64,000 bases of DNA from Orbicella franksi (taxonomy: Eukaryota). Positions 36,604 through 43,899 of this stretch are shown piece after piece. The position numbers and the translations under genes were made by a program. The stretch is taken from contig OZ116707.1 in assembly GCA_964199315.1 (NCBI GenBank), forward strand, positions 7,564,001-7,628,000, given 5' to 3'. Within the stretch, counting starts at the first letter, position 1; each line of letters opens with the position of its first letter. The notes beneath the pieces are model-generated. The model was not told where the DNA came from and did no database searches. It saw only the letters and a program-made list of their open reading frames with translations.

Positions 36604-36923
36604 ATGAATGAAAAAGAGAGGCGTATTCATAAAGAGAGGAGAAAGAGGCAAAAGCGGAGGCGAAAAGAACGGAAAAGAGAAGAAGCAAGGCAAGCAAATA
36701 TCGCAGATCACCGTAAGCGCATAGAAAAAGAGGCAGCACGGATTTTAAAGGAGCAAGTCCGGGAAGTACATGCGTCAAGAAAACAGGCCGGGGCAGACCA
36801 AGACGAAGGCGCACCAAAAAAGGCTCTTTGTCCAGGTTTGCGTTCAGTGAAGGAAATTAATCCATTTCACATGATTGTCACAGGAAAACATTTAGGATCA
36901 GGTACTTATGGTTCCTGCTACCT
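36604..36923 (+). pseudogene. Protein kinase gene, 5' half (Gly-rich loop)
   Basis: Charged helical N-terminus, then GKHLGSGTYGSCYL, cut by MITE copy 1. Confidence 0.75.
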
Positions 36924-37108
36924 ACAATCCCAGACAAAAGACTTGGGACACGAAGCAAGTTCTCCCCTCCCCCCACTTTCAATGTTGATAATCAGGTGAT
37001 TTTTCCCTTTTTTGTTGGAGAAAATGCGATATTTTCCAACATTGATTAGGGGGGAAGGGGGATACGTGATACAGCTCAAGTGTCCCAACTACTTTTGGCC
37101 AGGATTGT
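36924..37108 (+). mobile_element. 185-bp MITE, copy 1
   Basis: Imperfect ~28-bp TIRs ACAATCCCAGACAAAAG...CTTTTGGCCAGGATTGT; near-identical to 41287-41469. Confidence 0.85.
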
Positions 37109-37400
37109 CTGAAAGAGATATGCGAGGAATTTTCCAATAAAGGTAACGCCAGCGATCGTCATGGCGTCACGATATTTTAGAATTTGATTTCGGCTTAATG
37201 ACGTACACTTTGTTTCTGTAAATTGGACAGAACTTTTTTACGTTAGTCTAGATTAAGGTTCGGTGCAGATATTCGTGGAATATAACCCGTAACCGCCTGT
37301 AGGAAAACGAAATTTGGGACTTGCTTCAAGCAAAATGGCATTTAAGGGAAGGTTAGAGCTCGTGTCTATTACTTAAGACATTTTCCAGGATTATCAATTC

Positions 37401-37667
37401 GCAAAGTAGCAGATCTTTGTGTTGTTTAACAGAATAGTGTTAGATAAATTGACTTAAACCCAATGAAATGCTTATCGGTGTAGAGTAATATCACCATTAC
37501 ACGTATATCATCATTACACGCGACACGACAGCTTCCAGGTTCCATGTGTTTTGTGAACGCGCACGAATAACCACAACAGTTAACCACAACGGTTAACCAT
37601 TTGAAAGTCAGCGTTTTGCAACCTAACCTTCCCTGTTCTTCCCAATTGGCAGAAGGTTAAAAAAATT
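37401..37667 (+). repeat. 267-bp direct repeat, left copy
   Basis: Matches 38543-38809 with about 2 substitutions. Confidence 0.95.
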
Positions 37668-37769
37668 TTAAAAATTTTTTAAACAATTTTTTAAAATTTT
37701 TTAAAATTTTTTAAAATAATACTAGTGAGCAGCACTTCAGCAACAGATCTTGTCAACTTGCTTTATTTT

Positions 37770-37811
37770 CTCTGACCGGTTTCGTCTGATCATACAGATT
37801 TCATCAGGGAG
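37770..37811 (-). ncRNA. Hammerhead motif, degenerate copy
   Basis: Same motif as 38285-38326 with one stem I and one stem II substitution. Confidence 0.65.
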
Positions 37812-37910
37812 TTTTTGACAATATTTTTAAAAAAATTTTTTAAAATTTTTTTTAAAAAAATACTAGTGAGCAGCACTTCAGCAACAGATCTTGTCAACTT
37901 GCTTTATTTT

Positions 37911-37952
37911 CTCCGACCGGTTTCGTCTGATCATACAGACTTCATCAGGGAG
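37911..37952 (-). ncRNA. Minimal type I hammerhead ribozyme
   Basis: Exact reverse complement of 38285-38326. Confidence 0.85.
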
Positions 37953-38284
37953 TTTGAACAAGATACATAAAGGAACTTATTTTATACCTATTCTTTAGAG
38001 TACAAATCACGTTCCGACTAGGGTGTGAACAGCAAAAAACACCTACAAAATTGCGTGCAGGATATGACTAAAATCCTGTGAATGTGCAATGTATAATTTT
38101 GGGGCTCACGGATTTAACGTTAAATCCGTGAGCCCCAAAATTAAACATTGCACATTCGCAGGATTTTAGTCATATCCTGCACGCAATTTTGTAGGTGTTT
38201 TTTGCTGTTCACACCCTAGTCGGAACGTGATTTGTACTCTAAAGAATAGGTATAAAATAAGTTCCTTTATGTATCTTGTTCAAA

Positions 38285-38326
38285 CTCCCTGATGAAGTCT
38301 GTATGATCAGACGAAACCGGTCGGAG
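38285..38326 (+). ncRNA. Minimal type I hammerhead ribozyme
   Basis: ctcc-CTGATGA-a-gtctg(tatgat)cagac-GAAA-ccgg-TC-ggag; palindromic ACCGGT stem III of the dimer-dependent Penelope/retrozyme type. Confidence 0.85.
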
Positions 38327-38422
38327 AAAATAAAGCAAGTTGACAAGATCTGTTGCTGAAGTGCTGCTCACTAGTATTATTTTAAAAAAATTGTTTAAAA
38401 AAAATTGTTAAAAAAATAAAAA

Positions 38423-38464
38423 CTCCCTGATGAAGTCTGTATGATCAGACGAAACCGGTCGGAG
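38423..38464 (+). ncRNA. Minimal type I hammerhead ribozyme
   Basis: Identical to 38285-38326, 138 nt downstream. Confidence 0.85.
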
Positions 38465-38542
38465 AAAATAAAGCAAGTTGACAAGATCTGTTGCTGAAGT
38501 GCTGCTCACTAGTATTATTTTAAAAAATTGTTTAAAAAATTG

Positions 38543-38809
38543 GCAAAGTAGCAGATCTTTGTGTTGTTTAACAGAATAGTGTTAGATAAATTGACTTAAA
38601 CCCAATGAAATGCTTATCGGTGTAGAGTAATATCACCATTACACGTATATCATCATTACACGCGACACGACAGCTTCCGGGTTCCATGTGTTTTGTGAAC
38701 GCGCACGAATAACCACAACAGTTAACCACAACGGTTAACCATTTGAAAGTCAGCGTTTTGCAACCTAACCTTTCCTGTTCTTCCCAATTGGCAGAAGGTT
38801 AAAAAATTT
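38543..38809 (+). repeat. 267-bp direct repeat, right copy
   Basis: Matches 37401-37667. Confidence 0.95.
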
Positions 38810-38929
38810 CTCACTTCACATTATTTGAAATGCAGGATGGAAGCAATTTGGTGGCAAAATAGTCAAGTTTGACACTTGAAATATGGTTAACCGTTTGCCG
38901 CAGATAATAAGTTAACTACATAACTACCC

Positions 38930-40506
38930 TGAGTAATGTCACCCTCATCCATAAGAAGGGCGATGTGACCGATAAAAACAATTACCGACCAGTCAGCGTT
39001 ATCTCTGCAATCTCTAAACTATTTGAGAAAGTGCTGTTCGACCAGATGTACGCCTCCTTTGCACCAATTTTCTCGCCCAACATGTCAGGTTTTCTTAAGG
39101 GACACTTCTGCGCTACAGCGTTGATCAAATTAACAGATGATTGGAGACGCACACTTGATGAAAAAAAAGAAGTGGGTGTAGTTGCTATCGATCTCTCCAA
39201 GGCCTACGACTGCATTTGCCACAATCTGCTGCTAGCAAAGTTAAAAGCGTATGGCTTGCAAGAACCAGCCCTACAACTTTTAAGATCATTTTTGCATGAC
39301 CGTAAACAAAGGGTAATATGCAATAATACGTGTTCTAGCTGGTCACTTTTACAGTGCGGCGTCCCGCAGGGAAGTCTCCTTAGCCCCTTACTGTTTAACA
39401 TCTTTATGAACGACATGAACGAATCTGTTTCTGTCTCTTCCCTCCGCCTCTACGCGGATGATACAACCGAATATACGGCGGACGAAAGTCCTCTTGTGCT
39501 TCAACACGTCTTAAATCAAGACATGGAAAAACTATCTACCTGGCTTAACTACAACTATCTTCAAGCCAACGGGGACAAGACACAAGCAATGATTCTTGGG
39601 AATTCAACATACAATTACGATTTGGAGTTTGATGGCACCTTAATCGATATCAAAGAACATTTAAAGATCCTTGGAGTATGTCTGGACAATAAGTTATCTT
39701 TCAAAGAACACACAAATGTAATGCTGAAAAGAGTATACGCTAAGATTGCCGCACTTCGTCGCCTCAAGCGCTTAGTACCCATAGATACTTTATTACTTTT
39801 ATACAGGAGCTTTATATTACCGCATTTTGAGTATTGTAATTCTTTACTGATTGGTATAGGTAAAACGCTCAACAAAAAAGTGGAAGACGCTAACTACTAC
39901 GGTCTACGAACAGTAATGAACACGGGGAAAACTTCTAATTATGAGTCATTACTCAAACTGTTGGGCATGAGAACGCTAGAACATAGACGTATTGAACAAT
40001 CTCTGATAATATTTTTTAAGTGTTTCAAAGAAAATGGCCCACGTTATATCACCAACTTATTCAAGCCCCGGGTCACGCCATACAATCTTAGAAGCAGCGG
40101 GCTAAACGTAGAACAACGCCCTTACAATAGTAGATTCTTCCACGGCTCGTATTCTTATATCATCTCTAGAATTTGGAATCAGTTACCACCGGCAGCAAAA
40201 AATGCAGCAAACGTTCCAGCTTTTATCAATCATCTTAATACAATAAACTTTGGTGGCTGCCAATGCAGTTCTTGTCTTAAATGATTCCTTTACATGTTGT
40301 ATTTTTATCGTTTTTTAATATTGTATTTTCAACGAATATTTTTTAAGATATTAATAGCATGATAATTTTGTATTTTTTAATATATAGTTTTTAAATCTTT
40401 TTTTTAACATGTATGTCAAACACTTTTATCATGAGCCCCTGGCTCGGGAGACTTGGGCAACCACTCCCCGTGTTCTTGACGTAAAATAAATTACCTTACC
40501 TTACCT
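38930..40506 (+). mobile_element. 5'-truncated L2/CR1-group LINE (RT ORF 38965-40284)
   Basis: NYRPVS, DLSKAYD, GVPQGSLLSPLLF, YADDT; 3' GGGAG/CTCCC stem-loop, AATAAA and a (TTACC)n tail. Confidence 0.92.
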
Positions 40507-40879
40507 TTTTATTTCAATTGAACGATTAACCATATAAACCTCGGAAAGCTCTCTGTTGCTAGTTCTTGATCCCAGACAATGTTAAATGGTTTTTCGTAAT
40601 TCGTATAAAGCGGGAAAAGGTATAATTCGAATGACACGTAGCAGTTTGGAACCAAATAGTGTTACCAGAATGGTTAACCGTAAGGGTTAATCGCGGCGGT
40701 TAACCCGGTGGCACTTCTGAAGCCAAAAACACACCTCGCTTTATACGCGTTCCAGTATTAGAGGGGAAAACGAAGGAAGACATGCATAATTTAACCGCGT
40801 TTAGGTAGCAGCAACGCTTTATTGCTGTCCACAGATTAACTCCGCGAAACGGTGACGACAAGGCGAAAATATCCACTTG

Positions 40880-41286
40880 CCCGGCACCTACTGTTTCAAC
40901 TGAATTTGCATCATTTCTGTTTCGCGCCAATCAACCAACCCTCTAAAGACGTAGACAAGGTCGTATTTTTCAGTGCAGGAAATAGAAACATCCTTTTTAA
41001 ACACAACATCTTGTGCAAAGTTGCATTTCACGGGCAAGCAAGTGGGCCGTTTGCCCCTCAAGAGGCAACAGAAGGTCATGCCACGGACTTACCAATCGCC
41101 TACCGTAGAAGGTCATTTACAAAGATGACTTTACATTTCTTAGTGCCCGACCAGGTAAAACTTGTCATTGTATGTTGTTTCTTTTTAGTAGCGCTCGTTA
41201 GCTGTACCCGCGAGACGTTACAACTCCCCTCTTCTCCAAGCTTTGTTAGAGCGAGTGGTGTAACATTCTTTAAATTCTTCTTTCAG
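40880..41286 (-). pseudogene. Highly decayed SF3-helicase-like coding remnant
   Basis: Frame-broken TSFTWSGTKKCKVIFVND, WHDLLL..EGQ and NFAQDVVFKKD resemble the Walker B/motif C region of SF3 helicases in invertebrate Rep-helicase elements. Recognition from memory only. Confidence 0.35.
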
Positions 41287-41469
41287 ACAATCCCAGACAA
41301 AAGACTTGGGACACGAAGCAAGTTCTCCCCTCCCCCCACTTTCAATGTTGATAATCAGGTGATTTTTCCCTTTTTTGTTGGAGAAAACGCGATATTTTCC
41401 AACATTGATTAGGGGGGAAGGGGGATACGTGATACAGCTCGTGTCCCAACTACTTTTGGCCGGGATTGT
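41287..41469 (+). mobile_element. 183-bp MITE, copy 2 (same orientation as copy 1)
   Basis: Near-identical to 36924-37108. Confidence 0.85.
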
Positions 41470-42169
41470 AGGGTCTTACAGAGGACTGGATGTTGTAGTC
41501 AAACAACTAAAAGTTAAAAAATACAGTGGAGAAACGCAAGAAGTTGCAGAGACAAGAGTCCGCAATGAATTGATCTACGAGGCTCGGATTATTAACAAGC
41601 TGGGTGACCATCCCGGTCTTCCTCTACTTTTCGGAGTATGCAGTAAGTGTGCACCATTTCGCCTTGTCATACAATTTCATGGCGTGAAAGACTGTAGCTC
41701 AGCGCTCATGATTTGCAGCACGCTGACCAAAATGGCAATATCAGCTGTAACAGTGTGGCTGGATGTTATACAAAAAGTGGCAGAAGCTCTTCACGTCCAC
41801 AACGCCGGATTCGTCCACAATGACATAAAGGGAAACAATGTTGTTCTGGACAACCGGAATGAAAGAAAGTACAATCCCATTTTAATTGACTTCGCTAAAA
41901 GCTTGCCAGTGACTGGTCTCAAAGGACCCAAGGTTCTCTTGGCAGAACAGCAGACAAGATACAAGAAAGAGTATCCGCACATTGCCCCAGAAATAGTCGC
42001 AGGAAAACGAGGGCAAAGTATCGCCAGTGACATTTTCAGCTTCGCCCATATGACAGAAGTTATTTTCACGAAGGCCAAGCTGGGTACCCTGCCCGATGTA
42101 CTTCAGAGAGCTTTGGACTCTGATCCACACAGAAGGCCAGCTTCAAAGGAAATCCTTGCGCTTCTTTGA
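41470..42169 (+). pseudogene. Protein kinase gene, 3' half
   Basis: GSYRGLDVVVKQL, ELIYEARII, VHNDIKGNN, LIDFAKS, HIAPE, SDIFS. Confidence 0.85.
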
Positions 42170-43899
42170 ACTATATTTCTTGTTTTAATTCTAACCTGTT
42201 TCTTGCTCTGAGATTTAGTGAGAATGCCAAAACGTAGAAAGTGCGATTGCAAAAAAAAATTCAGACTCGGGGTTGGGAACAGGAGACCTAACGTGTTTTA
42301 TTTTTTTGCGCATTCACTTTTGTTATTTTCTCATTCCTTCTCTCTGAGAGCACAGAACTGGCCATTCAATTTGAATAATTAAACGAAGACAGACTTTGGC
42401 CTGGTTTATGGAGAGTGTTAGTGTGTTATGTTCGTTTTAGCCTCAAACAGTTTATCATTCTCAGATTTCCGTTTTAACAATCGATTGTTTGGTCTTAGTT
42501 TGTAGCAATCCAACAGGGATACAGAAGAGCAAAGTACTGATTTGTACTAGGTGCACAAGGATCGTTTGTATTCTCAGTTTTCCCTGGCCTTTGGCCAGGT
42601 TGATAAATGAAGAACTCCTTGACCAAAATGACATGATAAATTTATATTAGGCCGGTTTGAGTGGTCGTGGTAAATTGATTAAATCGGACAAGAAATCTTT
42701 TGATACGAAGAACTATTGAGTTGTAAGTGTAAGTAGAGTGTTTCTTTGGACGCTACTTTCAGTAAATGGAAAATATATAAAGATTTGTTAGCTGTAGCGA
42801 AATTTGTAATGAGCGGCACTGGTTGAATACAGAAAGATCTCTCAGTTCCAGTTCCGGTGTTAGATACCAGAGATAATATCAAAGGTACCACGCATAATTC
42901 ATATCATGCCTTAGATTTTCGGTTATAACCAAGTAACAACTGGATACGAAAACCTTGGTGTTGATTAGTTGATTACGAAAAACAATTTGGCTTGTATTTT
43001 CCCTGATTTGTAGTGAGACTGAACCATAGCAGCCTTTTTCCCATTTCGTTGGGCATTAATTAAACGGAGACATTTTCGTGTGAATATTTTTACAGTTAAA
43101 AAACAACACGGTTTGAACGCAACAAAGCCAACTGTTTTTCTGTTTCGACAGTGAAAAACGCCATCGCGAGTACCATCAATTTATAGGTTCGAGTGCAGTG
43201 GATTAGCGCCGGCTGCGCTAATGTTTCCAGAAAGAAAAGGTTTTTAATTACCTTGATTTTGTTTTCAGAATGATTCCGTTGACAGATAGATGCCGTCTTA
43301 GTTTGATTTTTTAACACGTTTCTTGTCAAGAAGCATCAAATAAATTATACCCTGCGGTTAAGTTGGCTTGGATTAAAACTAGACCCCCTCACGACTTTGC
43401 GCTATTCACTAGCACAAAGTCAGTAGGGGGCAGCTATTTCAGAACCTCATGAATCTCGTCGTGTTTTTACACAAAAACAAACAAAAACTGTTGCACTGTC
43501 CAGCAAGAAAAGAAAAACTGAATCACGTGACCAAGTGTAAAACTGACATCCTGACTCATACCCAGGTCTCCCAGACAGTGTGAGAGAACTTTGTTTCCTG
43601 CCTCTTTCGCAAGCTCACCTGGCAGGAAAAACATTGGCCACCTGGGCGATCAAAATTACCATTACACACGTTCAAAATAGTTGAAATAGGCATACAGTGT
43701 ATGATCAAACCATAGAAAGTTAATTGGCTGTGAAGTTGAAGATGCTTCTGCTACATTGTCCCTTAAGAGGAATTCTGGATTGTTGATTGTTTGTTGACTG
43801 ATTGTGTTATTGAGTTCTGTCTATCTGGTTTCTTGTGGATTTTTCAAGCAATTTCAAGTCTCAGAATTTACGGTTTAGCAACCTATATTTTGTTTCATG

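Follow-up and report, generated by a model that had tools for sequence, protein, structure and literature searches.

A tails-out palindrome of a coral Penelope-like pseudo-LTR between 267-bp direct repeats in Orbicella franksi, probably the product of one insertion

The window analysed here, 64,000 nt of the genome of the coral Orbicella franksi (GenBank assembly GCA_964199315.1, contig OZ116707.1, positions 7,564,001 to 7,628,000 of the forward strand), carries a spacerless palindrome that lies exactly between two copies of a 267-bp direct repeat. The arms of the palindrome are the pseudo-long terminal repeat (pseudo-LTR, or pLTR) of a stony-coral family among the Penelope-like elements (PLEs) that has a full-length form encoding a reverse transcriptase (RT). 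The direct repeat is DNA of the transposon that received the insertion, here called element T, and the repeated part of T is termed segment A. Palindrome and duplication were probably made together, by a single PLE-mediated event. The features of the locus, in window coordinates, are as follows.

37401..37668, plus strand: left copy of segment A, the stretch of host transposon T that forms the target-site duplication; starts at 37396 with the AATT microhomology; single copy in the X16 contig
37669..38118, minus strand: left arm, PLE pseudo-LTR module
37764..37815, minus strand: outer hammerhead of left arm, with two G>A changes
37905..37956, minus strand: inner hammerhead of left arm, intact
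38097..38140, no strand: 44-bp palindrome (22 + 22 nt) native to the terminus of the pseudo-LTR, sharing its centre with the large palindrome
38119..38542, plus strand: right arm, same module, with a short terminal tail
38281..38332, plus strand: inner hammerhead of right arm, intact
38419..38470, plus strand: outer hammerhead of right arm, intact, 138 nt from the inner one
38543..38809, plus strand: target-site duplication, right copy
37108..41287, no strand: host element T, multicopy and non-coding, with 8-bp inverted ends TCTGAAAG and CTTTCAGA

The direct repeat spans 272 nt at 99% identity (37396-37667 and 38538-38809); read strictly it comprises 267–268 nt (37401-37668 and 38543-38809), with the AATT microhomology and then one mismatch to its left. 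The two copies of A differ by two substitutions, both transitions, and a 1-nt indel in an A-run. The 874 bp between them form an inverted repeat, and gapped extension from its axis (38118/38119) gives arms of 424 and 423 nt. An earlier note on this DNA had described a perfect head-to-head symmetry about this axis; the axis and the lack of a spacer stand, but the arms are 96% complementary overall, with 4 substitutions in about 363 nt (~1.1%) outside the A/T stretches. The internal A/T stretches differ by about 15–20% between the arms, against about 1% for the rest, and the terminal tails (~63 nt on the left, ~28 nt on the right) are strongly unlike in length and sequence. Outward from the axis, each arm comprises half of the terminal palindrome, segment C (163 nt), a first hammerhead unit, an A/T stretch, a second hammerhead unit and the terminal A/T tail, the units having a period of 138–141 nt. 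The remaining observations of the earlier note proved accurate: a 267-bp repeat adjoins both ends of the palindrome (267–272 bp), the ribozyme-sense 3' ends and their tails point outward (four motifs, plus sense in the right arm and minus sense in the left), and A/T tails match the host at both junctions. No further copies of A, of the hammerhead unit or of segment C were found within the window.

At the left junction, A ends in TTAAAAAA(A)TTT and merges into the reverse-complemented tail. At the right junction, where the AATT microhomology is present, the tail ends in AAAAAATTG, directly 5' of the GCAAAG of A; the original target sequence reads AATTCGCAAAG. Both target 3' ends, that of the top strand at A's right end and that of the bottom strand at its left end, could anneal to an A/U-rich tail, and the geometry of the junctions is that of ordinary target-primed reverse transcription, save for a nick spacing of 267–272 bp. 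The divergence of the arms outside the tails (~1.1%) is about that of the two A copies (0.7–1.1%) and, since both are about equally diverged, one event most likely made the arms and the repeats.

The identity of the arms was recognised from related loci. An exact search with the central 24-mer returned 31 coral-metagenome contigs, and in many of these the palindrome, segment C, one hammerhead unit and a tail form a module of about 300 bp. The module flanks two open reading frames (ORFs) as direct repeats at L016, L025 and L026, and in the long-read contigs L032, L036, L037, L039, L040 and L042. ORF1 of these full-length relatives has about 310–350 aa, and a domain search of it (Pfam, Atlas) recognised nothing. 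ORF2, between the pLTRs, has 580–620 aa (583–619 aa), matches RVT_1 weakly, and is 35% identical to an RT remnant at 30534-31565 of the window. Its homologues are proteins of about 580 aa from Acropora, Porites and Oculina, annotated DUF8422/HTH_animal/RVT_1, and among the nearest Atlas clusters are GIY-YIG-bearing proteins of 734 aa with the same fold (PLE architectures); a PDB sequence search with ORF2 gave no match. No GIY-YIG or other endonuclease domain was recognised in ORF1 or ORF2, and ORF2 stops right before the palindrome in every subfamily. It is this architecture, pLTR-ORF1-RT-pLTR, that identifies the arms as the pLTR of a PLE family, and because the full-length form of that family encodes an RT, the Penelope-type RT that had been proposed behind the insertion is supported. 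An RT acting in trans and a 5'-truncated cis copy fit equally well. The presence of two hammerhead units per arm was seen in no other locus, most copies of the family having one.

The four hammerhead motifs, two per arm, have CUGAUGA, GAAA and the GUC cleavage triplet all in place, the defining traits having been taken from PMC4209133. They belong to the minimal type I and lie in a module that also has an A/T-rich tail. Across the window and related loci, the proposed helices are paired in 96% of cells, against 18–41% when the partners were slid, and two subfamilies differ by compensatory double changes, one pair in helix I and one in helix II. Three of the four are intact by sequence. The left arm's outer motif carries G>A twice, breaking the first pair of each of helices I and II, and is probably impaired. 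Neither the gathering score nor E<=10 gave a hammerhead match in Rfam, a lack that is probably explained by the minimal helix III and an extra core nucleotide; what these scans returned, at the centre of the palindrome, were spurious microRNA hairpins. The motifs are identified as hammerheads by their intact core nucleotides and the two compensatory base pairs, despite the lack of an Rfam match.

The centre of the large palindrome is native to the element. In full-length elements, a palindrome of 22 + 22 nt lies directly 3' of the ORF2 stop codon and is therefore part of the element, so that the giant palindrome is centred on a conserved structural element of the retroelement. At nine further loci (L032-L034, L036-L039, L041 and L042) a palindrome with arms of 19–23 nt is kept directly after the ORF2 stop, its sequence being clearly different in L036-L039, L041 and L042. 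Counting L025, a loop-less palindrome follows the RT stop in 10 of the 12 loci examined; L040 has a looped hairpin at this position and L035 has none. The dyad symmetry runs through the apex of the terminal palindrome while the sequence changes between families. This pattern suggests the pairing of two identical strands, or regeneration by copying, more than an ordinary RNA hairpin. As single-stranded DNA, the 44-nt palindrome of the window is predicted to fold at -27 kcal/mol (z = -10.9). The inverted arm at 36 other centres is 12–40 nt long in 33 (mode 22), 75 nt in one and at least 91 nt in two, the last two ending at contig ends and possibly being one locus; the 424 nt of the window are the extreme. 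Several of these are partial inverted arms that begin at the centre (29, 29, 38, 40, 75 and at least 91 nt). At positions 605-660 of L025, the 5' end of a full-length copy that is 5'-truncated is linked via GTTAAA to no more than the first ~30 nt of the pLTR in inverted orientation, which indicates a template switch onto cDNA during insertion.

Segment A belongs to the host transposon. Contigs of four public coral-sample runs were aligned to 36500-42400 of the window, and one of them, a contig of 1111 nt from run X16, joins 37021-37489, 38646-38927 and 40504-40852, with one copy of A, no palindrome and no long interspersed nuclear element (LINE; such an element lies at 38928-40503 in the window). 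As A is contiguous with the T flanks in this insert-free contig, it is DNA of the host transposon, and element T as a whole has a depth 3–100 times that of single-copy sequence. The same observation, together with the lack of A at every one of the 31 metagenome loci found with the central palindrome, led us to reject the alternative raised in the earlier note, in which the repeats are terminal repeats of a permuted cargo.

A second case comes from L036, a 515-kb contig with an element of a related family (RT 65% identical). Here a full-length element adjoins a complete inverted pLTR, so that a perfect palindrome of 558 nt is built on the terminal palindrome of that family, and the whole insertion is flanked by a 178-bp direct repeat with one mismatch. 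The outer tail of the inverted copy reads AAAAAATT followed by an A-run, like the 3'-terminal tail of the element; the junction between the 5' pLTR and ORF1 differs at this place. Because the tail is of the 3'-terminal type, the template of the inverted copy was the 3' end of an RNA rather than the first cDNA; two target-primed cDNAs are thereby favoured over a simple snap-back. Head-to-head inverted copies were found not only at L036 but also at L039, L041, L008 and L011.

On the reading that we favour, two 3'-OH ends on opposite strands of T, 267–272 bp apart, annealed through A/T microhomology to the A/U-rich tail of the RNA, and each annealed end primed a cDNA. Both cDNAs would end in the self-complementary terminal palindrome, pair there and template each other, yielding a spacerless, tails-out palindrome, and fill-in of the two 267-nt single-stranded stretches of target would duplicate A. 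The nicks may have been made by the host, as the full-length relatives encode no recognisable endonuclease, and this would explain their wide and variable spacing. The order of these events, and two primings rather than a snap-back for the window copy, are what we infer; the more general proposal of the earlier note, a cDNA-based PLE insertion with a 267-bp target duplication, has been largely borne out by the pLTR identity, the host origin of the repeat and L036.

The most serious competitor, which we consider unlikely but well short of negligible, is a snap-back of a single cDNA. Primed at the right end of A, it would extend to the 5' end of the RNA, fold on the 44-nt palindrome and copy itself as far as the tail, after which its 3' end would be recaptured through AATT 267–272 bp behind the priming site. 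The stable predicted fold of the palindrome as DNA (-27 kcal/mol) agrees with this, as do the shorter right terminal tail and the two-unit layout, otherwise unseen, that both arms have in common, and self-priming has been proposed for PLE palindromes (PMC3846280). A strand that copied itself is difficult to reconcile with internal A/T stretches that differ by ~15–20% between the arms when the remainder differs by ~1%, and the tail of the inverted copy in L036, being of the RNA 3'-terminal type, would not result from a fold-back of the first cDNA.

A rearrangement at the level of DNA alone, of the type known as fork stalling and template switching or microhomology-mediated break-induced replication (FoSTeS/MMBIR), appears very improbable. 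A strand leaving A at its A/T-rich end would copy a genomic PLE, turn at the palindrome and return 267–272 bp behind its point of departure. Such a path would produce the duplication by that return, and it agrees with the microhomology at both junctions and with a turn-round at an inverted repeat, but PLE insertions repeatedly bear a tails-out, head-to-head arrangement as their signature, in published cases as well as at other loci. In addition, the ends of the insert fall in element 3' tails on both sides, and a two-unit donor copy was not found.

We give still less credence to a duplication of A unrelated to the insertion, whether as a pre-existing tandem that was hit at its junction or through later recombination. 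Nothing speaks for it directly, although contig joints reveal T variants that have internal deletions within A. The insert sits exactly between the A copies, copies and arms are equally diverged, a tandem A-A without insert was unseen in the four runs, and L036 has the same arrangement independently. An assembly or fold-back read artefact is the least credible explanation: palindromes are prone to artefacts and independent reads for the junction were not found, but in a fold-back chimera the flank would be inverted, and here A has the same orientation on either side, neither the arms nor the A copies are identical (transitions, half of them at CpG sites, and unlike tail lengths), and the palindrome is a mere 874 bp within otherwise colinear sequence. 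A foldback DNA transposon with terminal inverted repeats was also considered and rejected, as the arms end in A/T tails and are derived from a retroelement, and the flanking repeat is direct and 267 bp long.

Several points weigh against a single PLE-mediated event with two primed cDNAs. The partial inverted arms at other loci start exactly at the centre and show that snap-back occurs in this family as well, and priming at both target ends needs a source RNA with two hammerhead units, since two-unit arms are unseen elsewhere. The lack of an endonuclease is weakly established, being judged by the absence of a recognisable domain. The empty site foreseen in the earlier note was found as an insert-free copy with a single A (X16), but as an allele it is doubtful: the insert-free form may be a paralogue in another organism, and the aligned runs differ by ~2.7% at the kinase-like gene of the flank and seem to come from other species. 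For a right-junction-specific 60-mer no run was listed; reads therefore speak neither for nor against the structure, and the evidence for it as assembled is internal. Long duplications are occasional and not a rule of the family. No flanking repeats of at least 20–30 nt were found at the eight determinable long-read loci (L033, L035 and L037-L042), several of which have inverted partial copies; L034, a short scaffold with almost no flank, was left out of this count, and L032 lies in a 63-bp satellite where a duplication is undeterminable. Likewise, 16 short-read metagenome insertions show no exact border repeats of at least 9 nt, a sample biased against long flanking repeats because assemblies tend to break there. 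The earlier note had said that a lack of long flanking duplications at other copies would refute its reading, and such a lack was mostly what we found, at the 16 short-read loci and at the long-read loci other than L036 and L032.

The combination of two primed target ends recalls the twin priming that Ostertag and Kazazian reportedly described for LINE-1 in 2001. The likeness is that both target 3' ends prime and that the distance between the nicks sets the length of the duplication. LINE-1 twin priming differs in copying different parts of one RNA, which gives an inversion and not a mirror palindrome, and LINE-1 (L1) has its own endonuclease.

A head-to-head PLE palindrome is in itself already described. 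Rotifer Penelope pLTRs begin with palindromes of 18 bp and 38 bp and are often head-to-head (Arkhipova et al. 2013, PMC3846280), and an inverted copy adjoining the 5' pLTR is typical of PLEs (Craig et al. 2021, PMC8557442). The window insertion resembles these complex insertions in its hammerhead pLTR, head-to-head inverted copy, palindrome at the 5' end of the pLTR and outer tails, and differs in that each of its two copies consists of the pLTR alone and extends in full to the tail. The endonuclease-bearing (EN+) PLE clades are defined by GIY-YIG, unlike the full-length relatives studied here, in which none is recognisable. What is unusual is the 267-bp duplication, and again one of 178 bp in a related element, in a PLE group without a recognisable endonuclease and with a conserved, perfectly symmetric terminal palindrome. 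Target duplications of a few to tens of bp would be expected for a PLE, with 8–10 bp reported for rotifer Penelope, and both the window copy (267–272 bp) and L036 (178 bp) depart from this, while most other copies have short duplications or none.

Long target duplications are known from other retroelements. In HeLa cells, fewer than 10% of L1 events have duplications above 100 bp, and lengths of up to 5.3 kb occur when repair is deficient, a situation in which a distant, unrelated nick is thought to be used (Servant et al. 2017, PMC5223499); a retroelement without an endonuclease of its own would be expected to depend on such nicks. The rotifer R9 retrotransposon of ribosomal DNA (Gladyshev and Arkhipova 2009), as far as its entry in the references of PMC8557442 goes, shares with the window insertion a very long duplication (126 bp in R9) and target priming, and differs as a site-specific, LINE-like element with a constant long duplication, which is occasional here. 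Animal non-LTR retrozymes (Cervera and de la Pena 2020, PMC7229834; bioRxiv 10.64898/2026.07.22.740005) bear a partial likeness, in tandem, ORF-less units of 138–141 nt with a minimal type-I hammerhead and in their relation to PLE pLTRs; in the window there are only two units per arm, where most copies of the family have one, and they adjoin the terminal palindrome and a 163-nt segment that is not repeated.

Element T received both the PLE palindrome and a 5'-truncated LINE. The latter (38928-40503) has a 439-aa RVT_1 ORF at 38965-40284 and an (ACCTT)n-like 3' end, and is absent from the T copies of runs X1, X2 and X16, with an exact joint of 38927 to 40504. Palindromic motifs of the GGTTAACC type recur in T, at 37566-37615, 38870-38890 and 40670-40710. 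T is bracketed by direct copies, ~98–99% identical, of a 182-bp Stowaway-like miniature inverted-repeat transposable element (MITE) at 36925-37107 and 41288-41468, whose inverted ends read CAATCC...GGATTG and which has a TA duplication; many solo copies, in varied flanking sequence, occur in every run. T retains MITE sequence on both sides in another organism, and MITE-T-MITE behaves like a composite transposon. The outer 182-bp repeats were considered as a further giant duplication, which was rejected because they are two MITE copies with their own inverted ends, and the MITE-T-MITE block is absent with a TA footprint in three runs. This block of 4546 bp splits an intronless kinase-like ORF (36604-36922 and 41471-42169); in contigs from three runs, 36922 is followed directly by 41469, the two overlapping by TA, and the frame is restored (GSCYL continuing into GSYRGLDVVVK). 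For the host locus, the palindrome is a mere scar inside another transposon, and no host function is implied. A further side observation concerns L032, where the satellite arrays on either side of the full-length element (1-4559 and 8057-13752) are in mutually opposite orientation.

It could tentatively be speculated that the terminal palindrome is a device for pairing one cDNA with another, by which two cDNAs that started independently from host-made 3' ends, one on each strand, become zipped to one another and integrate without second-strand cleavage encoded by the element. If true, tails-out, head-to-head insertions would come with target duplications of arbitrary, sometimes very long, length, and the cases that might be cited are 178 bp (L036), 267 bp (the palindrome of the window) and perhaps 3.3 kb in the same window. 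The last is a direct duplication of 3.3–3.7 kb (3725-7469 and 31731-34955; 95–98% identity) that holds arrays of a 171-bp satellite, and its second copy starts about 50 nt after the RT remnant (30534-31565) of another PLE; no hairpin or pLTR like that of the palindrome locus was seen there, in a check limited to the repeat and the RT end.

Tandem and inverted PLE structures have been described, while their mode of integration is unresolved and an in vitro system is lacking (PMC8557442). The window locus and L036 provide clean natural snapshots of such events. In each of them the inverted pair is complete with its tails outward, both junctions show microhomology, the two copies meet on the conserved terminal palindrome, and the duplication is long; the single-copy empty form is known from the window locus alone. 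Taken together, the two loci argue that cDNA synthesis can be primed by both target 3' ends, and they suggest that elements without an endonuclease may depend on distant, host-made nicks. Such duplications copy hundreds of bp of host DNA, and the long palindrome that results could yield hairpin RNA or be unstable.

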